A stretch of DNA of 63,646 nt, filler included, from Reticulomyxa filosa (lineage: Eukaryota; Protista; Foraminifera): NCBI GenBank assembly GCA_000512085.1. It is 18 parts of 18 records of this genome, joined end to end, with 100 filler letters (N's around TTAATTAATTAA, not from the genome) between each part and the next. Parts side by side here need not be neighbours in the genome. Positions count along the whole stretch, not along the records: positions 43,954 to 48,781 come from ASPP01017965.1; 17 more parts are not named here. One strand, given 5' to 3'. Position 1 is the first letter of the stretch; each line of letters begins with the position of its first letter. Below the pieces are notes generated by a model. It saw only the letters and a list, made by a program, of their open reading frames with translations. It had not been told where the DNA came from and ran no database searches. Shown piece after piece: positions 11,775 to 48,781 of the stretch. A program made the position numbers and the translations under genes.

Positions 11775-12805
11775 ATGTATCGTGGTCTTGTGCAAAATTT
11801 GTCGCAATTAGATTGGGCAGAAGTGACCAAAAAATTAATAAATTCGAAACATGCCCTCATCGCCGTTGGACTTGTCACAGTCAGTGCTTGGGGGTTAGCA
11901 AGACATACGAGAGGAGGATCAAGTCCCAAAGAGAACACCGAAGAAAAGAAAGGTGAAGAATCTGACGAAGAATCGGATGAAGAATCGGACGAAGAACATA
12001 TTGAAGAAGAAGGCAAGGACGCAACAGAAAAACAAGACGCCAAGCGTAAGAAAACAAGAGACAATACGAATAAACCCCCCGAATCGGCGGCGGAGGATTT
12101 CAACTCATATAAAGTACAAACTCATAACATTAATGAATATTCACATCAACATCCACAAACCAATGACCAAGTTCATCCCTGAATTTTTTTTTTTTTTTGA
12201 AATCCCTTATTTAAAAAAAAAAAAAATGTTTGGGTCTTTGCGTGCAAATGTAGAGTCATGAAAAGAAAAAGGAAGAAGCCGATGATGATTTTGGTTTTTC
12301 AGCAGACGAACACTTTGTGCCCGGTCTTCGAATAAGCCAACAACATATTAAAAGAGACTCCAACAGGTTCAGCGAGACTTTTTTTTTTGTTGAGATTAAT
12401 CCTGTTTTTTTTGTTCTCTGATTCTATCAACAGTCCATTTTTTCAATTGGCGAACATATACTCATATTGTTCGGAGACGTCACCACAAGACGCAGAGCAC
12501 AGTGCCACGAGAGAGAGAAATAATGATGCATTAGCATTTAATGCACAGTATATGCAGAATGATCGAGTGATTCCAAATGACGAGACAACTTCCAACACCA
12601 CAAACCATATCCCTACCAATACCACCCAAGAAACTATTTCGAGGATAAGGCAAATGTATTTGAACAACAATTTGCCCCCTTCACTCCAACCTGAATCTTT
12701 AAACGAGGTACGTTGTTAATATTGGTTGCCCCTCCCCCTTTTTTTTACAAAAAAAAAAATTGTTTGTCTTGAAAGCAATGACGATACGTGAGAAATTGCC
12801 GTAAA
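11775..12805 (+). CDS. Hypothetical protein with an N-terminal hydrophobic anchor and acidic tract (multi-exon)
   Basis: MYRGLVQ...HALIAVGLVTVSAWGLAR followed by ESDE repeats; further exons at about 12254-12367 and 12433-12707. The 3' end is uncertain. Confidence 0.55.
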
Positions 12806-13180
12806 TTTGAACTGTATGAAAAATTCTTAAATTAGCTAACCATTTCGAATGTATTTCCTTTTTTTTTGTGGTCGAAAGTTTTATAAAGGAGGATGAATTT
12901 TTATTTTTTGCTGGTTTGCGGTTGTTTGTTGTGACATTATCAGTAAGTCTTTTCATTCTCACAAAAAAAGCGTTGTGCTGATGTCACTAAGGAAAAAGTC
13001 AATGCCAAAACGGAAGTGAGTTCATACGATATGTTTATCACTGCAGAAAATTAAACAACACCATCATTCTCAATTTTTCCAGTGAAAAAAGGAAAAAAGG
13101 GGTGATAGCAAAATGACCACTTTCATCTGACCAAAAAAAACTAAACAATAAAGTTGCTCAGTTTTTTGTTGTTGTTAAGT

Positions 13181-13590
13181 TCAGAATCTAAATTCGGGCT
13201 TTGATATATCAACAGGATCGTGCTCTGGTGCAATAATTCCCGCGTTCATAAATATTTGCTTAACTCCTCCCTGCAAAAAGAAAAAACATGAAAAAAGCTA
13301 ACATTAAAAAAAATTTAAAAAAAGACAAAACTGGAGTTTCAGTTAATTTTTTGATCTCTTGTTCATTGTCAGAATTCATTAAATAAGTGCCCAATGCCAA
13401 TTTACGATCGTTTCGAAAAGCTAACAATGGCAAGTAGTCATTTAATTCTGCCCCGAGTCTTTCTCGGTTTCTAATTCTTGTTTCGTAGTATTTTTGTCTT
13501 TCCTCACCATTCAAAGACAGCAGAGTTTTTTCTTCTTCCTCCGTGCGTTTTTTCATCATTTTATGCTTTATTGATTAATTGATTGACGAG

Positions 13591-13641
<51 letters not shown>

Positions 13642-14803
13642 CCAATTGATTCAACACAATGTTATACACGCAAACAATAAAAGTGTAACATCAATGGTAT
13701 GTACGCATCAGATATCACACAATTGTAAGAAATGTATGCACACATACGCAACATAGCATATATATATACATATATATATATGCTTATAATGTAAAATAGT
13801 CGTGTTGCACAGCCATCTAAATAATTCATACATGAAAATCTTTCCATCCTGGGACATTCCATAGATATCTACTCAAAGTATTTGGTTTGGGTTTTTTATT
13901 CTCCTCTTCAATATGTGCATCCAAGTCCGTTTGATACACCCATTGGATGCTTGGTTTGATCTGTTCAGTCCCTCACGGGCAAAACAGCACCCAAGCAATT
14001 GCTCTTTGTTGTATGCATTTGCGTTACAACCACGAAAACGAACAAACAAAAAAACAAAGAGACCCATGGCCATACCACTTGCTTTGTTTGTTCTGGATAA
14101 GGGTCCAAATCTTCAGGATAATAATAAGTCACCATTTTTTGTATCGTTTCATGTAAAGGCTAGCAAAAAAAAAGGGGGTCAATGTGCAATTCCAAAAAAA
14201 AAAAAAAGTAAAAAATTCAACACACATATTGATATTGTGTGATATTTCTAAACAAATTTAAAACCCAATTTTAAAAGATTATTGTTTGAAGTATCTATTC
14301 GGAACTTTTGCTGGGTCGACACCGCTCTGTTCATCAGTTTTGTTTGAAACACATTGCACCCAACACACCGTCAAATAACTGGGCTTCTTTTAACCCCCTT
14401 TTTTATATATAATATATGTGTATATATATTATACTTATATGCACATAACTTTTTCTGCCAATTTGATAAACTCGTCACACACAGCTTCATATTTAGGCGG
14501 TTGTTGAAATCGTTGCTCACCAAAGAGATATTTGTCAAAAACACTGCCGCTCATCAAGCCTACAGATGGAATGATCATATTTCCTTTGTTTTGATTTGCC
14601 CATCGTGATAAATATAGTTTCCATTGAAAGCCTTCACGCTCTTTGTATTCCTTATAATTTGGATCAAAGAAAAAGGCCGCTGTTCGCATTTCCTGGTATT
14701 TTTGGAAAAATGTTGGGTCAATGAATAGATTGTAGCCAACACCCCCCAGAAATGCCCACAACATCATGCGGTAACGATTTGCCCAAGTCGTTCGGATTCT
14801 CAT
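13181..14803 (-). CDS. Hypothetical protein (6 exons, one N-terminal hydrophobic segment)
   Basis: Exons can be joined in frame at GT-AG sites: MRIRTTWANRYRMMLWAFLGGVGY... / KPSYLTVCWVQC / PLHETIQKMVTYYYPED / IKPSIQWVYQTD / HKMMKKRT / ...PEFRF*. Confidence 0.65.
13570..13650. repeat. (ATTG)n tetranucleotide microsatellite within an intron
   Basis: Direct tandem GATT units. Confidence 0.9.
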
Positions 14804-15057
14804 ATCTTCTAATGTTGAAACACAAAGAAAACTTTCTACTGAATGTTGCCAAAAAAGTTGAACTGTTTCGGGCACCTGTTCACTTGGCAGTTGCAAGTGT
14901 GTTTATTATCAACTCTCAAGTCTCTACATGACAAAAGTTAACGCTTTACTCAAAACTACATTTTTTAGAGTGATTTGTTTTTAAACAAAAATTTCAGTTT
15001 TTGGAGTTAAAGAAAAAATGTAATACAAATATAAAATGACTGCATAAAATAAGTAAA

Positions 15058-15488
15058 CAGGAGAATAGAAAAGAAAATTGATCTAAAATGGCACTTTATG
15101 AAGACGATTGATTTTCTCCATGAAAAAACGACGTTTAATCAGAATTTTTTTAAGAAATATCTACGAATTGTGTAGTTTTTAAATATCATGTTGACTTTTT
15201 ATTTTATCTTTCGAAATTTTTTCAAAAATCTTAAAAAAAGAATTGGCAAATTTCACGACTACGAGAAAAACACGATTATCAATTTTTTCTTGAAAATTTC
15301 AAAAATCAAATGAAAAATTCCAATTTTTGAAAAAATTTCAAGATAAAATAAAAAGTCAACATGATATTTAAAAATTACACGATTTGTAGATATTTTTAAA
15401 AAATTTGATTAAATGTTTTTTCATGGAGAAAATCAATTATCTTCATAAAGTGCTGTTTCAGGTGTCAACTTTCTTTTTTATTCTACTG
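15058..15488. mobile_element. MITE, probably Tc1/mariner-derived, with about 170-bp terminal inverted repeats
   Basis: 15058-15229 is the reverse complement of 15323-15488, including a perfect 35-nt match TTTTTAAATATCATGTTGACTTTTTATTTTATCTT. Ends are CAG(G/T)AGAAT...ATTCTACTG, followed by TA on the right. No ORF. Confidence 0.85.
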
Positions 15489-16020
15489 TATCTTTGACAT
15501 ATGAGGTTTTATACCTTTCCTTTCTTTGTATGCTATTACAATGTTTGCTTTCAGTGATAGAAGTTATTTACAATAAAAATATTAAAGAAATAATGTGCTT
15601 AATAAATCAATTTAAGCTCACATTTATGCAAAGAAGCTCAAAATGTAAGTGAAGAATTCAATTAGAATACAATAAATACGTTCACTCAATACAATATATT
15701 CAATATAGAAAAAAACCCGAACAAAGCATTAATTATTTTATATGAACATTCATTTATAATTATTTCTACAATAAACATTGAAATAATTATATCTTGCGTT
15801 CACTTTTGCATTTGTACTTATTATATTGCATGATTGACATTTGAAACGAGAACATATTTGTTATTTTTTGGTGATAACTGTGCAATTATGCAAAATTCTT
15901 TTAAACTAAGAAGACTCGTTTTGTCGTGTTTTACTTGAAAAAGGGGTTGTTCCGCTTGGAGCTTTGCGAGGACCCTTTTCCGGTTTTGCCATTCTTTATA
16001 ACTTCAATAGATCGATCAAA

Positions 16021-16830
16021 ATGCTCAACATTTTGCTTGCCTCGAATATAGCATGTGATGATATTGATGGATCAACTGCTTGCTGGTTTTTCGGCTTCAT
16101 TGGTGTAGCTGCTGCAATTGTGTTTGCAAGTTGCGTTTGTCAAATTTTTTGTTTGTGCATTTTTACAACTCGCGAAAATATATGGCAAAAAGCAAAAATT
16201 TTGGATTTTGTGAACTTTTTTCAAATTGGTCGTCGAATTGCATGTAATAAAAACAAATACCAAAAAATCAGATTTGGGATCAGCTTACGGCACGGCAAAG
16301 TCTGGAGTAGGCATTTCTGCAATGGGTGTGATAAACCCTGACCCTGTCATGAAAAATATGATCCCTGTCGTCATGGCAGGTATCTTGGGAATTTACGGAT
16401 TGATTATCTCAGTCATTTTAGTTGGCAACAGTTAAGAACCGTTCAACCGATTGCTTTTACCTTTTCTTTTATTATTTGTATTTATTTCCGCAAACGCGCA
16501 ATTTTTTTTTGGTCACAACTTTATTTAATGTGGCTTCATGGAGGGAAAAAAAAGTATACGTTTCAAAGGTTTTTGTGTCGTTGCTTTTGAACAGTCAAAT
16601 CGTCAGGATACACGCATTACAAAGGTTATGCTCACTTGGCCAGTGGCTTGAGTGTGGGCTTGTCTGCTTTGGGAGCAGGTATGGCAATTGGAATTGTTGG
16701 TGACGCAGGTGTGCGAGCCAATGGACAACAACCAGCTTTGTTTGTTGGTATGATCTTGATTTTGATCTTTGCAGAGGCCTTGGGATTGTACGGTTTGATC
16801 GTGGCCATTGTGTTGTCACAAGCCAAATAA
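16021..16830 (+). CDS. VMA3: V-type ATPase 16-kDa proteolipid subunit c (3 exons)
   Basis: [80 protein letters not shown] with the proton-binding Glu. Confidence 0.97.
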
Positions 16831-17430
16831 ATAACTCACAAATACTTAAAATTTCATCTCCTTGTGTGGTGCTTAATTTTGGACATGTGACGCAATGAGA
16901 ATTTTTTTTTTGCAAAAGAGAAAAATGAGCACATTTTTGATACAATAAAGCTGAACGCTTGTGATTGATATTCTGATTTTAAGATGTTTGTGTTTTTGTT
17001 CCCAGGATGTTGGGGGTTAATTATTGGATAAAGGCAATATCTTGTGCGAAAAATTTGTGAGGGGAAATTGCGTTTCCAAGGCACTTGTTGTTTTTGAAAA
17101 ACTTGAACCACTTACCCAAAACCTCGTACCTATGATTATCCGTTAAAAGGAAAAAAAATCAGCGTTACTCTAAACCTAAATATAAAGAACGTGCGTTTCT
17201 TTTTGAATCAAGTATAGATTGCTCTTCTAAAATAAAAAACTTCGATTTTCCGGTTTCATGTTTTTAGGTTAAATTTTCACAATTTTTCATTCTATACAGT
17301 ATTGCATCGACATAGTTGAATATTTTTCCTTCAAAATCAGCAGTTCGAAGGGCAAGAGCTCATCCAAAAAGGACTAACTGCACAAGCTTGTGGCAGCAAA
17401 ATCGTTATAAAATTTTATTGTCAAGAACAA

Positions 17431-19256
17431 ATGTCAAAACAACCCTCGACACCAAATGAATCATTTTGGAGTTTAGAGACCTCTCTAGGTTTGTTGAGAA
17501 ACAGCTTAGCGTTTTTTTTGTTTCTGCAGACTCTGTCGGAGGGCACAAAAACAGAACAAAACTTTAAAAAAACCAGTGAAAACTAAAAAAGAAATAGAAT
17601 ACATGGAAGACTCTGTGAATTGGGACGAATATAATGGCATGAATGAAACAAATGAAGAGAACATGAATAGTTTGGATTCGGAAGTAGGTATGACAGAAAC
17701 AAAACAAGAACACACGATAAGTCCGCAATTAAAAAAAGGCAAATCAGAAGCCAACATGCTGTGGTGTACAATTCCCCTAATACAATGCAACAGAACTTTA
17801 GGTTCAAATTTATTTTTACTATTGTCGTTATAATATTGTATTTGTAGTCTAAACAATCAACTGGAACAAAAAAAAAAACAAACAAAGACGATAGTAAGAT
17901 ATCAAATTCAGTGGAAAGCCAAAAAACAAGCATGACTAGTTCGGAAGTAAAGGCAAAAGCAAAAAAAGAAAAAGTAAAGTTACTGAAACAAGAAGAGTGG
18001 CCAAGAGAAGAGACAGATACTAGTAATGGAAAGAGCGAGCAAAAAAGAATGGAGTGTGAGGACATGGCAATGAAAATAGGTTCCTCGTCAAGCGAGTATG
18101 AAGTGAGACAATGTGTGTCGATAGTGTGGACAAACTTACAAAGAGCGACTCAAGAGCTCGAGAAAGTGCAAGGCGAGCTCTTGCTCCAAAAGCATGAGAC
18201 TATGACATGGCAATTGAAAAACAAAGGTATTTGCATTACATTCATCAACACAACATACACATATTACAATACTCGCATTAAAATGGCAACCTATCACATG
18301 TATGTATACATAAACATATATGACGCTCAAATGAAAAATATAAAGCCCTGCAAAACAAAGTGGACGAAATACACAAACAATTGCAAATTGCAGTTGAAGA
18401 TCGCAATGAAATTGCCAATGTTGCAGATACGTACCGTCAAGAAAATAACAACTTGCAGTGCAAACTTGCACGCTGCAAAGTCAATTTGGACACATGCATG
18501 CTCAAATATAACACGTTACAACTCCAACAAAAATCATTATCTTCAATGCAAGACCAATTTCAAACCCAACTGCACAAAGAGTCCATTTTGAGAATGCAAG
18601 ACAAACTGGGTTGGGAAGAAGTTGAGTTTTGGTTCAATTCTTATATTTTATTACATATTACAAATCATACATATATATACATATAATCATATGTTTAATA
18701 CTCTCCTACAGACAAAAACAGAGTTAGAACGGACTTTTCAACAAAATCAAACTTTGCACCAACAAATTGCTTCCATTCAAACTCAATTGGTGGATGAAAT
18801 ACAGCAACGACAACTTTTGCAATCCCGAATTGATAATATCAGCACCGGATCCAAATTGGTTATGGTTTGTTGTCTTGCTTTATTTTGTGTGTTGTTATCA
18901 TGTTCTCATTATGTGCGGATGGGGATGCAACGGAACAGCCTCAGAACAACTCCAAACATTGTTCACAAACTTGTGATCAATCACCACCAACACAAAATGC
19001 GCAGTCTCTCAATACATTACAGGATTACCACAAGTCAGACAAAAAACATGTAGTGACGTACAATCACAAACTCACCGTTCGGACCACTATGCAACGCTCT
19101 CTTGTGTCCAATTCAAAAACAAAGTTAAAGACGCCTTCTAACGTTTCTTCTGGTCTCTCTCATCCTCGAAAATTTGTACCCAGGGCTAAACATTCCAAAA
19201 CCAACGCAAAATGTCTTCGATCCAATTCTCAAACCAATTTAATTTGCAATGTATAG
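17431..19256 (+). CDS. Hypothetical coiled-coil protein with a basic Ser/Thr-rich tail (multi-exon)
   Basis: Successive GT-AG exons with Q/E/K/L heptads at 18130-18840. Confidence 0.6.
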
Positions 19257-43853: not shown

Positions 43854-44039
43854 NNNNNNNNNNNNNNNNNNNNNNNNNNNNNNNNNNNNNNNNNNNNTTA
43901 ATTAATTAANNNNNNNNNNNNNNNNNNNNNNNNNNNNNNNNNNNNNNNNNNNNTTTTTTTTTTTGTCTGCATGTTATACATTTACGAATACTAAAGATCG
44001 AATTTTTTAACCCCCTTTTTCGCCCACTCAAAAAAAGTA

Positions 44040-44802
44040 TACGTAACAGCATTTGCCGCGAAATTATTCCACAAAAGTACCATTATAGCACCATCCATAA
44101 TCACCGTACAAATAATAAAGCCCATAGTCGTATAAAAGAGGCAGTGGGGGACTAAAGCAAAAAAAAAAACATTGTGTTTCAAACAACATAACGAAAACAA
44201 ATACAATTTTTTGCTAGTTGCTGCTCCTCCCTCTCTTAAAAAAAAATGCATAAGATTATGTATACAATTTTTTTTAAAGGTTTACCTTTTCGCTTACAGC
44301 ATCGCAAGAGCAAGTTGATCATATTTGCACTTAAGGCAATACCACAAACAACCATCAGCACAAAAGACAGGTAATGAACTTTTACTCCAGCCTTTTTTAA
44401 TGCCTTCAGCTGGATGCAATAGTCGCCGTGGCTGTTGTAATCTCTAATGTTATCTTTTTTGCACATGTCATCGTAGGCATCACTATAACTCACAGTCAGA
44501 GTCTCGTTTAATGCTTCGCCATTAAAAGCGTAGGATGCTGTCAATTCCATTTCCTTGTACCTGTTAACAACCAACATTCGGTCACCTTTCAGTCTATCAC
44601 TCAAAAAAAAAAAAGGAATATTTCAAACATACTTGAATGTAGCATCGGAATAAATGCCGTACGAATACATAGAAGACGTATCATTAAAATGCGAGGATCC
44701 ACTTACCGAAAAAAACTCGTCTACTTCAAGCACTACCCAACACATTGAAAAAGATATGATCAAACACATTGGGGCAAACCAAACATACCGAAATGTGCAC
44801 AT
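44040..44802 (-). CDS. Multi-pass membrane protein (claudin/amastin-like topology), 3'-truncated
   Basis: An N-terminal TM helix, an extracellular loop with two Cys, then two further hydrophobic helices separated by CCKRK. Confidence 0.55.
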
Positions 44803-45402
44803 TGTTACAAGACTTGCTATTATTAATAAAAGAGAGAAACTTTCACAAGCCTAAATTTTTTCCTTGTGCTAGCACCGAACTTCAGAAACTCTCTTGCAAG
44901 TAAAATTGTCACTATGTAATAAACATAAAACGTTTTAGCCTGACGTTGTTATTTCATACTTTTTTATTCGGTTTTCATTCAAATTACTCTAGATATTGAC
45001 TCCAACAGCTTTTGGCCTGTTCCAGTAAACAATTTTTCTAAGGTGCGATACTTCTTTTTGGTTTTAAGTAAACAAGAACTGTTTTGTTTTTTATTGGCAA
45101 AATGTCATTCATTGATTTAATTGGTTTTTTTGTTGATAACTTTGTCATCTTTAACAGAAGTGGTTATGATACACTATCAATATTGAGAAGTTATAATAAA
45201 TAATTAATGTTTTGATACTTCTATTAAATATGCTACCGTGATGGTTTGTAATACATGGTGTTCAAAGAAATTTCTTATAATTAAAGCGCGTGATTTTCTA
45301 CGGTTTTTTTGCGTGCAAACTCTATAATAATTCATTTTTGGAAATGAAAACTTCATAAATGTTGTACAGGAAGCCTTTTGTAGGAGTACAAAAAAATTCG
45401 AA

Positions 45403-46160
45403 ATGTCAAGATCAAATGTACAAAAAACCTTTGCAATACCGCCATTTGGATATATATTATGCAATGGGGTTTTAATGAAATGGGATGATTATTTAGCAGA
45501 AGAAATAGTGGAAGAAGTACAAATCATGCCACCGTTGGAGCGAGACAATACGGAAGAATATGTCGTAGAAAAATTAGAAAAAGCGATGGAAGCATTAGAA
45601 AAGGAAAGAGATGAATATGAATGCAAAGTGAGGAACCACTATATGAAATTAATGGAGCAACAAGTGGCAAAGATAAAAGCGATATTTAACGAACAAATAA
45701 ATCGAATACATGATTTTATTAAAAAGCAGAAGTCGGAATGGACATCAAAGGGAGAAACTTCAAAAAAGGATAGTGACAACGGCCAACGTATTCAAAATAC
45801 ACTGACGCTAGAAGCAGCCGCCAAGATAAAAAAAACGAGTGACAAACCGCAAATCCCTTTGTCGTCGTGTATCTATTACAAAGAATATGTAACCATTAGC
45901 AATACCAATACAAATGCAAATATAAACGCAAGTGCAAATACAAATGTCAATGCAAACACAAATGGTATCGCTCAATTGCTTTTGGAATGGAGCAATGATG
46001 ACAAAGCACAATCACAATCCCCAAGCTCTAATACATCATACACAATACAATATCCGAACGAAGAAGGTCGTGAGAGTCCCATCCTTGCACATAACAACAA
46101 CAGCTGCTATAATAATAATACTACGCATGTTTTCGATGAACTCGATGATAATGATGATAA
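45403..46160 (+). CDS. Hypothetical coiled-coil plus Asn-rich protein
   Basis: Long ORF that runs out into a (TA)n microsatellite; its link to the downstream ARM exon is unresolved. Confidence 0.55.
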
Positions 46161-46187
46161 TATGATGATAATGATATACATCATCAT

Positions 46188-46218
<31 letters not shown>

Positions 46219-46269
46219 ATCATTACAATAAATTCTTTTATTATTTTTCCTTCCTTTTTTTTTTTAAAG

Positions 46270-48781
46270 CTGCTCATATCATGGTTCAATTGGGAGTGCT
46301 GGATTTGATATTGACAGTAAGTAAAGGCTATCCGGATGAAATTGAAATCCAAAAGTCATGCTTGGGATGTGTTGGCAATCTGATGAATGAAACCTCAAAC
46401 GCAGTGGCCTTCTTGGACAAGAAGGGACACCTTCGCATCTTTGAAATAATGAAAGGGCTCGTATTTGAAGAGTCGGTCACATCTTTGTGCTGCAGGCTAT
46501 TGGAGTTCCTGGCCGCCGACTCGGATACCGCAAACACATTAATGGAAAGTGGGGGATGTCGGGCAGTGGCAAGATTGTTGGAAGATAATATCAATCAATC
46601 CTCTTTGATCGCATTAGGTGTAAAGTGCTGTGCAGAATGATATCAACAGATGAGGCAGTACAAATGATTGCAAAGGAGGGCATTGTAGAATTGATGGTCA
46701 CAATTAGCAATGAACAAGACAATTGGAAAAATCTGGAAATTATGAGTGAGGTTATCAAAGTGGTTGGAAAATGTAGTGGATTAGAAGAAAATGCGCAGTT
46801 GTTTGCGAAAGGAGGCTCCGTTGCATTGTTGAAGGCAATTGAAATCCATCATGCCAATGCCGCGTTTATAGGGAATGCCGCAATAGCTTTATCCAAATTG
46901 TCCGTTCATCCTGCCGCGTCGCGATCTTTGGTCAAACGAGGTGCCATTGCGGTGATTGTCGAAAGTGCCAATGTCAATGCAGAGCTCAAAACAGTCATTG
47001 CAAGATATTTACGCACATTGTCGAACTTCTTATATACGGAAATAAAAGCAGGAGAAGAAATCGCGCGCACAAATGCCTATCAAGTGATGCAACATATCGC
47101 TGAAACACATTCGAGCTTTGAACCTTTAACAAAAGAATGGACCGAGTTTGAACAAGCTATTCGCTTGAAAGCTAACAAAATCGGCCAAGACTCGGCCAAA
47201 CACTACAGTGTCTCTATTCGAGACAGAATTGACAAAGCCAATCTACGACTTCTCACTGCCGGCACAGTGATGCGCAAACATGACGACGGTTAGTTTATAC
47301 TTTTGAAACACTTTTTTTTTTTTGGATTTAATCACATATAATTTTACCTTTTTTGCATCATTCCTATTTAATGATCATAACAACAGTACACTTAAGTAAG
47401 GCTCATAAGAAATTAGTTCGCGTGGATGAAAGCTGTGAACTGCTTCTATTTGAAGATACAAATGGAAAGAGAGAACCCGGGCGATTAGATATCAAAAGTA
47501 TTCGACACATTCAAGGCGGAAATAGCCATCCGTCAATGCGTAATGTTCCAAAAGGGTGTGGAATTCAGATTGTTTCGACTGATCCAAATGGTCGCGAGAT
47601 TGTTGTCTGTTTGGAAACCGAGACTGGCATTGAATGTGACAAATGGCTCAGTGCCCTCCAAGAATTAGTGCATGCATGGTCAAATGATAAAGAAGAAGAA
47701 GAAAAAGAAGAAGATAAGAAAGAAGATAAAACTGAGAAACAAAACAAAATAAACAAAGCTATCGATGTTAAATATCACTTTTTTTTTTGCTTGATTATAT
47801 TCAATGATAATCGCATTTACATAAAAAAAAAAAAAAAAAAAAAAAATAGGAGAAAGAAGAAAAAAGGAAATGGATGAAATGGTGGAAAGCAAAAAATGAA
47901 AAAGACAAGTCAGAAATTATTTCAAAATTTGAACATTTATCTAAAAGTGATTTTGGAATATGGCTATTACATCAAAGTAAATGGAAAAATGATTTAACGA
48001 ATGAAAATTTATCTGCAATTTGTGCTGTAATTGAAATTTACATTGACTATAATTTCATTGACAATGTTTTGTTGTTTTTGTTTAGTAAAAAAGAAGTAAT
48101 TACGAAAAAATTAATAAGATTGTCATTTATATTACTTTGTTAAAATAGCAAACAGAAAAAAAACAAGAAGACGACGGAGTTGATTGTGTGCTTTTTGTTA
48201 TTGTTTTTTTTTATTATTATTATTTTTTTTATTCAAATCATAATAACAAACATAACAATAGTTGACAGCTTATGTGATAGTGGATGAAACAAAAAAATTG
48301 ATAAAAATGAAAGAATTAACATTTGAAGAACTTCTTCACCAAGCATATATCTGCTTGGAATCAAAAGCTTTCCAAAAAATCAACAATGAAAATTTAAAAT
48401 TGCAATTGGTTGATATGAAGAACAATATCATTGAATCGAATGAAGCTGTTAAAAAAGAATTTGAAAGTAACGAACCCACATTTAAAATTGTTTGGATTTC
48501 GTTTCAACAGCCGGCGATATTTGGAAAAACAAAAACCATAAAAAATGCATTGGTAATACTAATTGCTATCAGTGAATATGAGGATAACAATATATGGAAA
48601 AATCTCAAAAATGTGAAAGAAAAGGATATTAAGAATTTTAAACAATTGTTCGAACAAGAATTGAACTATGAAATTGTGTACAATCCATCACCAAAAATGA
48701 CAAAAGAAGATATCCAAGATTTTATGGATCAAGTAACGATCAATTTCAAACTTCGAAGAAACACTAATAAATATGATGGAT
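46270..48781 (+). CDS. Armadillo-repeat + PH-domain + caspase-like (peptidase C14) protein, both ends incomplete
   Basis: ARM-like helices at 46270-47200; PH-like LLTAGTVMRKH...CDKWLSALQEL; phase-0 introns 47767-47849, 48066-48148 and 48179-48261 join it to NALVILIAISEY...DIKNFKQLFEQELNY...TKEDIQDF...KYDG. Confidence 0.7.

Follow-up and report, generated by a model that had tools for sequence, protein, structure and literature searches.

We analyzed a 63,646-nucleotide stretch of DNA (hereafter the window) assembled from 18 parts of the genome of the foraminiferan Reticulomyxa filosa (GCA_000512085.1) and focused on the part at positions 43954-48781 (ASPP01017965.1), an AT-rich locus with short introns in which the exons were searched one by one. 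At this locus, a duplicated 3' portion of a gene encoding armadillo (ARM) repeats and a PH domain, deprived of its stop codon, appears to be joined via a linker and a phase-0 intron to a standard caspase cassette, a reading to which we assign a probability of about 0.68. The fusion itself is probably real in the DNA. The cassette consists of a Trp-rich four-helix unit (W-unit), a beta-grasp domain, and a C14 caspase domain. Labels beginning with L denote contigs and those beginning with P denote proteins used for comparison; L006 is ASPP01040839.1, which carries protein P0105, and P0001 and P0008 are ETO26590.1 and ETO33708.1, respectively.

An open frame leads from the ARM-PH region into the caspase cassette

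All exons of the fused gene lie on the plus strand. The first part of the ARM-repeat exon (46270-46622, frame 2) follows an acceptor AG at 46268-46269, gives weak Pfam matches to ARM_ARMC5, ARM_LRRK2, and Arm, and shares 78-88% protein identity with R. filosa L007/P0090. The second part (46631-47288, frame 1) is 71-74% identical to P0089, P0090, and P0097 and ends at a phase-1 donor (G|GTTAGT). The 98-bp phase-1 intron that follows (47289-47386, GTTAGT..ACAG) is skipped by the cDNA-like relative L012, which aligns to 46864-47289 and then to 47401-47667, and an intron occupies the same place in L006/P0105. The PH domain (47387-47667; Pfam PH, E = 0.006) is the final stretch in common with unfused ARM-PH genes; PF00169 is annotated on the homologs P0093-P0100, and PF24768 together with PF00169 on ARM-PH homologs. 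The ARM-PH module named in the initial annotation is thus recognizable by its similarity to paralogs in both the ARM and PH regions, but its ARM frame is broken by a single nucleotide.

Past the PH domain, the parental stop is absent and frame 0 remains open from the PH exon (..ALQELVHAW) via ..KWLSALQELVHAW through a Glu/Lys-rich acidic linker (VHAWSNDKEEEE..KAID, 47668-47766), with the first stop at 47875. The linker runs into an 83-bp phase-0 intron (47767-47849; GAT|GTTAAAT .. A22-TAG|GAG, acceptor AG at 47848-47849) that connects the ARM-PH part to the cassette and has the same type of donor and acceptor as the corresponding introns of L002, L003, L005, and L010. Upstream of the W-unit exon, no donor other than the one after the PH-linker exon is both in phase and preceded by an open frame. 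The reading of frames and splice sites agrees with the initial annotation, in which the PH frame passed through the acidic linker and a phase-0 intron into the Trp-rich exon. Moreover, the splice first proposed there is used by the model of P0105 on L006, which is spliced ..KWLSALQELVHAWSNNKEEKEKEKEEDKK..KAID|EKEEKKKWMKWWKAK.. across the same 83-bp intron.

The W-unit exon (47850-48065) opens with EKEEKRKWMKWWK and carries the motifs W-x-K-W .. F..WLL .. KWK. The only phase-0 donor that closes it is AAT|GTTTTG at 48066, and the exon end initially set after SAICA had to be moved, as the paralogs code on beyond that point (..AI.AIE.YIDY..). After intron sequence at 48066-48261, the last exon (48262-48780, acceptor AG at 48260-48261) opens with LTAYVIVDE and ends with ..NTNKYDG at the contig edge. 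It encodes a domain at 48262-48510 that is modeled in paralogs as a PB1/ubiquitin-like beta-grasp, followed at 48532-48780 by the N-terminal portion of a caspase p20, whose first strand is KNALVILIAISEY .., with the contig ending before the His strand.

The probable fusion breakpoint lies where similarity to an unfused parental-type gene ends

The same genome contains an unfused ARM-PH gene of the parental type. When the ARM region was used in a word search, unfused ARM-PH proteins of other organisms and three R. filosa paralogs were returned. Contig L007 aligns to 46262-47667 with 72% DNA identity, its similarity starting 8 bp before the acceptor boundary at 46270 and ending exactly past ALQEL; from there its frame reads QAVCTTAENKMEE and stops 15 codons on, with no cassette found within 2 kb downstream of the stop. 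Likewise, the similarity of L012 (a cDNA-like sequence from the Joint Genome Institute (JGI), 74-78% identical) ends at 47667, and its frame reads ..QSVTLAAKETE before a stop 12 codons later. Other unfused ARM-PH relatives stop within ~50 residues past the PH domain. The fused locus departs from this family trait, a C-terminal PH domain with a stop within ~10-50 residues, in that its frame stays open to the splice donor.

The breakpoint at 47668 coincides with a drop in GC content, from 0.38-0.48 (46354-47653) to 0.20-0.30 beyond ~47650-47700, which the initial annotation had noticed at ~47685. That annotation had also proposed that an AT-rich cassette was joined to part of another gene and called for a search for the unfused parent; L007, whose similarity ends where the cassette side begins, is such a parental-type gene and supports the proposal. 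Parental-type genes are very large, with ARM models of 640 + 231 + 278 aa in L007 and 1721 + 331 aa in L008, and the locus carries only the last ~460 codons of the ARM-PH gene, its 3'-terminal third. Between the ARM-PH part of the locus and L007, the ratio of nonsynonymous to synonymous substitution rates (dN/dS, by the Nei-Gojobori method as in all comparisons here) is 0.06-0.09, with dS saturated.

Two ideas about the origin of the junction were considered and rejected. Homology of the acidic linker to the linkers of Kelch-type genes was not upheld by blastn, which found compositional likeness only, the alignable similarity to other cassettes starting at ~47829-47843. Retroposition of an ARM-PH mRNA, of which the A22 run might have been the mark, does not fit either, as the ARM-PH part keeps an intron and A-rich intron 3' ends are a feature of the family.

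The W-unit exon is probably internal to a larger gene

The same sequence could be read as two adjacent genes, with the ARM-PH frame reading to or near TGA 47875 and a separate caspase gene starting at ATG 47871 (MKWWK..). An ATG does exist at this position, the GenBank models P0001, P0007, P0016, P0019, and P0025 begin at the equivalent Met, and a search of sequencing runs gave no transcript across the junction. However, in the locus and in L002, L003, L005, and L010 alike, exactly 8 codons separate the acceptor of the W-unit exon, a phase-0 AG, from the W[MTA]KW motif downstream; therefore, ATG 47871 is internal and not a start. The residues ahead of the Met are conserved as well, being K/R/E-rich and then Trp, while some paralogs and second repeat copies have Thr, Ile, Ala, or Val in place of the Met itself. 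The Met is therefore a residue of the motif and not a conserved start codon. Phase-0 acceptors ahead of both the W-unit and beta-grasp exons occupy the same positions in L002, L003, L005, L010, and L011; among the mapped contigs, L002 and L003 carry Kelch repeats and L010 carries a zf-TRAF domain and a coiled coil.

The two seemingly stand-alone models examined at their loci, P0001 and P0007, offer little help to a two-gene interpretation. Both begin with MKWW and have a Kelch gene 62-146 bp upstream, the open reading frame (ORF) of which can be spliced to the model. On L005, a phase-0 in-frame splice (..KQIT|GTTGAG .. AAG|KKEEKKKWMKWW) joins the Kelch gene directly to the W-unit exon, and on L001 the equivalent splice requires a 1-nt shift within an A run. 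GenBank annotates the Kelch and caspase parts as separate genes, 62-146 bp apart, at L001:4951-7681 and L005:8722-11742; these gene pairs are probably split annotations of single genes. Moreover, the GenBank models P0004, P0008, and P0012 are Kelch-caspase fusions, and P0068 is an uninterrupted metagenomic ORF of 731 aa in which the same fusion is seen without any gene modeling.

At the locus itself, two genes would have frames overlapping by 7 nt (47871-47877), which leaves no room for a promoter, and none of the ARM-PH relatives has anything like the unspliced tail (VKYHFFFCLIIF..K-run), in which the parental stop is missing. Because the acceptor position is conserved, the Met is not, and other cassettes are fused to upstream sequence, the W-unit exon of the locus requires an upstream exon. 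We thus regard two adjacent genes as improbable and a single fused gene as the better account of this boundary.

The cassette belongs to a lineage-specific caspase family

An exhaustive search with the last exon identified 88 relatives, 31 of which match PF00656 (Peptidase_C14). All 18 relatives that were looked up are either R. filosa proteins (GCA_000512085.1) or JGI metagenome contigs, and the caspase family is real and lineage-specific. The last exon is 82% identical to P0001, which itself scores PF00656 at 1.5e-20. A protein atlas gave a weak caspase lead for the last exon (0.75) and none for the W-unit, and sequence searches of the PDB with the last exon and the ARM exon returned no meaningful match. 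The assignment to C14 holds because the homologs match PF00656, not because the fragment in the locus does so itself.

Most family members keep the GHG and D[AVI]CRG motifs. Among aligned paralogs, the catalytic His is present in 29 of 33 and the catalytic Cys in 22 of 29, several members being degenerate. For the last exon, dN/dS is 0.115 in the comparison with L001 and 0.24-0.36 with more distant paralogs, and the cassette exon looks constrained, under purifying selection.

The W-unit (47850-48065) was aligned with 22 paralog units, in which W38, W45, and K46 are invariant. It has no Pfam match, and a W-unit profile searched against PDB sequences found nothing meaningful; a resemblance of its DF..WLL..(K)WK pattern to the C-terminal helix of GIP/oxyntomodulin (E = 0.04-0.35) in that search is almost certainly due to chance.

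Predicted structures of the cassette

An AlphaFold2 model was built for residues 320-726 of the paralog P0008, which is ~55% identical to the exons of the locus, from a 48-row family alignment (mean predicted local distance difference test score (pLDDT) of 89). The model comprises three units: a four-helix unit, a beta-grasp, and a caspase domain. In Foldseek searches, the modeled caspase domain retrieved caspase-8 as its best match (E = 4e-13, template modeling (TM) score 0.78), followed by caspase-3, -6, -7, and CED-3, with the top PDB matches at E ~1e-13 to 1e-11 and a target TM score of ~0.75. The paralog is thus predicted to have the caspase/hemoglobinase fold of the animal type.

A second paralog model, restricted to the two small units, reached a pLDDT of 91, with the beta-grasp region above 90. 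The small alpha/beta domain is modeled as a PB1/ubiquitin-like beta-grasp, the similarity being at the level of the fold only. By VIA-align, the predicted domain has a Z score of 8.1 to the PB1 complex 4mjs (80 residues, root mean square deviation 3.5) and of 7.6-7.7 to the PB1 domains of MEKK3 and MAP2K5. The PB1 domains of NBR1 and p62 are also among its structural matches, and CIDE-N (Z = 6.1-6.6) and ubiquitin-like domains score slightly lower than PB1, the matches beyond 4mjs spanning Z values of 6-8. Foldseek likewise retrieved PB1 domains at a probability of 0.97-0.98 (E = 0.01-0.04). Neither the beta-grasp exon nor any of the 88 relatives matches PF00564 (PB1), and no Pfam CIDE-N match was found.

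The W-unit is predicted to form four helices in the paralog model (pLDDT ~90). The death fold considered for it in the initial annotation has six helices and is not supported by this four-helix model. A model of the W-unit and beta-grasp together aligned weakly with a SAM-SUMO fusion (E = 0.011).

The cassette is found behind diverse N-terminal partners

The N-terminal partners of the cassette comprise Kelch propellers (at least eight representatives), TPR, HSP70, zf-TRAF with a coiled coil (P0054), and ARM-PH (the locus and L006). The TPR partner of P0006 is joined directly to the beta-grasp exon over a phase-0 intron, and a WD40 Pfam match in one further family member may mark another partner. 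The junction introns are in phase 0 in L002, L003, L010, L011, L006, and the locus; the GenBank model on L004 has a non-zero phase at its junction. The suggestion in the initial annotation that the N termini are swappable by means of phase-0 introns thus holds for the DNA and the gene models, the cassette standing behind Kelch, TPR, zf-TRAF, and HSP70.

Some of these genes have features of their own. In P0023 on L009, a partial W-unit and a beta-grasp exon come after HSP70 (Pfam E = 9e-158), in a model that reads through likely introns. The 6.2-kb contig L004 carries tandem caspase genes, a 320-aa C14 model (725-1687) and then the Kelch-C14 gene of P0012 (1829-5108). On L005, a gene for a 1795-aa protein with NACHT and HEAT/ARM domains (12442-17829, minus strand) lies directly downstream of the Kelch-caspase gene, a possible case of clustering of immune-type genes.

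L006 as a second instance of the junction, and evidence against the fusion

The same junction, linker, 83-bp intron, and W-unit exon are found on L006, a contig of 1224 bp. Compared with the locus, L006 is ~80% identical in the second ARM part and the PH region and 94-100% identical over ~47600-47997. The junction and linker stretch at 47668-47766 is common to L006 only, with 86-98% identity, and the L006 linker differs from that of the locus by a 6-bp in-frame indel, while the indels in the intron are small and cancel in length. A one-off misjoin is unlikely because two different flanks enter the same junction. GenBank names P0105 "exopolyphosphatase, partial", which is unsupported; the protein is an ARM-PH-W-unit fragment, the first ~30 residues of which are in the wrong frame.

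Several observations, given here and in the two paragraphs that follow, weigh against the fusion reading. Because the locus holds only ~80 residues of p20, PF00656 does not match the last exon alone at E ≤ 1; the match is found in 31 of its 88 homologs. The catalytic dyad lies outside the contig: the catalytic GHG of P0001 follows ~9 residues past the point that matches the contig end, just as the initial annotation had placed the end of the contig shortly before the catalytic His. The linker and intron at 47668-47835 have no alignable counterpart in other cassettes by blastn. In the search of sequencing runs, a single 188-bp contig was placed on the locus, at 48316-48503, and none across the junction; this contig, which is identical to that part of the beta-grasp exon, comes from two "synthetic metagenome" runs (X1 and X2). 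Finally, the junctions of L006 and the locus are near-identical in sequence around the breakpoint and so are not fully independent, with gene conversion or a partly chimeric L006 as possible sources of the near-identity.

An assembly chimera would consist of a false join at A/G-rich low-complexity sequence in a repetitive, fragmented genome. The junction does lie in (GAA)n-like sequence with a sharp change in GC content, homopolymer frame errors occur in the assembly (46624-46630, the A8 run of L007, and L001), and L006 is short and has an odd internal jump, from position 47997 to 48410, in addition to its near-identity around the junction. However, the near-identical block starts inside true PH-coding sequence (~47600) and crosses the junction into the cassette, and two ARM-PH flanks that are 80% identical are each linked to this block, each with its own small differences. 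Moreover, a false overlap would have had no GAA-rich 3' end of the unfused parent to start from, and the join preserves the frame, the donor, and the acceptor alike. Taken with these points, a chimeric assembly seems highly improbable, and a fusion present in the genome accounts for them better.

A harder question is whether the fusion, real in the DNA, is at this copy a decaying pseudogene among fragmentary duplicates, with no functional protease. The ARM reading frame changes by 1 nt at 46624-46630 (plus strand), where paralogs are continuous (..LG-x-x-x-LCKMIST..) and P0090 and P0097 run uninterrupted across the matching site. No intron explains the break: a tiny intron was considered and rejected, as no GT..AG candidate of suitable length gives a paralog-like reading. 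The change is either a homopolymer sequencing error or a true disabling mutation. In addition, dN/dS between the two fused copies is 0.53 (241 codons), and with L007, P0089, and P0094 as outgroups, 29 derived amino acid changes fall on the locus branch, at otherwise conserved ARM-PH positions, and 17 on that of L006. L006 has a frameshift and a deletion of ~410 bp, and the remainder of its W-unit exon and the beginning of its beta-grasp exon are missing. The loss of His or Cys in several family members and the restriction of the locus to the 3'-terminal third of the giant parent point in the same direction.

Against decay, the break may be a sequencing error of a kind also present in L007 and L001, the splice signals and frames downstream of 46640 are all intact, and the cassette exon has the low dN/dS of 0.115 given above. 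The value of 0.53 would also be expected if just one of the two copies were dead, or if a sensor or bait domain had changed adaptively. After the fusion, constraint on the ARM-PH fragment was relaxed or altered; together with the frame break, this can be read as decay of the copy, as a live copy paired with a dead one, or as the rapid evolution of a domain for recognition or bait. The copy at the locus may be relaxed or decaying, and we consider a pseudogene a doubtful but serious reading, set beside our preferred one of a duplicated ARM-PH portion joined to a standard cassette. One-nucleotide frame changes in or next to A runs were seen at L007:7283-7292, at L001:~6265-6275, and at 46624-46630 of the locus; they fit homopolymer sequencing errors, and frame breaks alone are no proof of a pseudogene.

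Relation to known proteases and possible mechanism

To our knowledge, true caspase-type C14 proteases are rare outside animals. Klim et al. 2018 (PMC5982838) reported caspase-type proteases in R. filosa, grouping with those of animals; that work gives only the protease phylogeny, and accessory domains and fusions are not covered in it. Later papers use one R. filosa caspase as an outgroup in studies of apoptosis evolution. In the literature searched, there was no description of accessory domains or fusions of R. filosa caspases, and the fusion is probably a new architectural variant of an already published, lineage-specific caspase family.

Compared with the R. filosa caspase-like proteins P0001 and P0008, the locus shares the C14 domain, the W-unit, the beta-grasp, and the exon/intron plan, whereas the usual partner is a Kelch propeller and here it is an ARM-PH fragment. 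Animal initiator caspases with CARD or DED prodomains resemble the family in GHG, in DxCRG, and in having small noncatalytic modules before the protease. However, their modules have a six-helix death fold, whereas the R. filosa cassette is predicted to have a four-helix W-unit and a PB1-like beta-grasp, and the R. filosa proteins possess an extra large N-terminal repeat or ligand-binding domain. The unfused ARM-PH proteins (L007/L008, P0093, P0095, P0100, and L012) are 47-74% identical to the locus in ARM and PH and have the pre-PH intron at the same position. They end 10-50 residues past the PH helix, whereas the locus continues into the cassette, and the unfused R. filosa genes encode more than 1700 further ARM residues upstream, where the locus has only the last ~460. 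PB1 and CIDE-N domains (p62, NBR1, MEKK3, and PKC-iota/Par6; DFF40/45 and FSP27) have a beta-grasp topology like the predicted one, at the level of a common fold (Z ~8).

Initiator caspases, paracaspases, and PB1-mediated polymers suggest, by analogy, a possible mechanism. The product would be one polypeptide, the ARM-PH part of which might bind a protein partner or a phosphoinositide-containing membrane and so localize the protein or act as a sensor. The W-unit and the PB1-like domain may oligomerize and bring protease domains together, and the caspase would then be activated by induced proximity, as is the case with the prodomains of initiator caspases.

A broader view would make the foraminiferal caspases an innate-immune-like surveillance family, in which phase-0 exons shuffle a constant oligomerizing cassette onto duplicated host fragments (ARM-PH and HSP70) or repeat sensors (Kelch, TPR, and zf-TRAF). 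The fast-evolving ARM-PH part would then serve as an integrated bait or decoy, as in plant NLRs. This view is speculative, and we think it unlikely to hold.

The R. filosa caspases are multidomain proteins, with a fixed adaptor-plus-protease cassette behind very different N-terminal domains and with symmetric phase-0 introns. They are a concrete case, in a protist, of cell-death or signaling proteins assembled in the style of exon shuffling. Their organization raises the ideas that PB1-like oligomerization may drive caspase activation and that ARM-PH, HSP70, and TRAF-zinc-finger modules may be sensors or baits. Annotation errors come to light as well, one fused model being misnamed and several Kelch/caspase pairs each probably forming one gene, and work on the evolution of apoptosis that uses R. 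filosa caspases as outgroups ignores their multidomain make-up.

Other features of the contig

Within the intron sequence between the W-unit and beta-grasp exons (48066-48261), a possible phase-0 mini-exon of 30 bp is present at 48149-48178 (atag|..|gttgatt), which may be what is left of a second W-unit exon. L005 has a second W-unit exon, and its similarity begins at 48200, directly past the donor at the end of that exon.

Upstream of the ARM region, an ORF on the plus strand (MSRSN.., 45403-46165 as an exon, 301 aa when read to 46308) encodes a coiled-coil-like N-terminal half followed by Asn/Thr/Ala-rich low-complexity sequence. It may be the 5' exon of the fused gene or a separate orphan ORF. 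Phase-1 donors able to reach the acceptor at 46270 are present in 45403-46165, for example at 46070. The ORF has no Pfam family and no homolog in a word search, and the paralog L007 has no similarity to the stretch upstream of 46262. An (AT)n microsatellite lies at ~46190-46215, near the 3' end of the 45403-46308 ORF.

A tRNA search found none. On the minus strand, several ORFs of 59-122 aa are present at 43991-44802, and none of them has a Pfam match. One of these ORFs has a hydrophobic C-terminal segment, and together they may be exons of one minus-strand gene.

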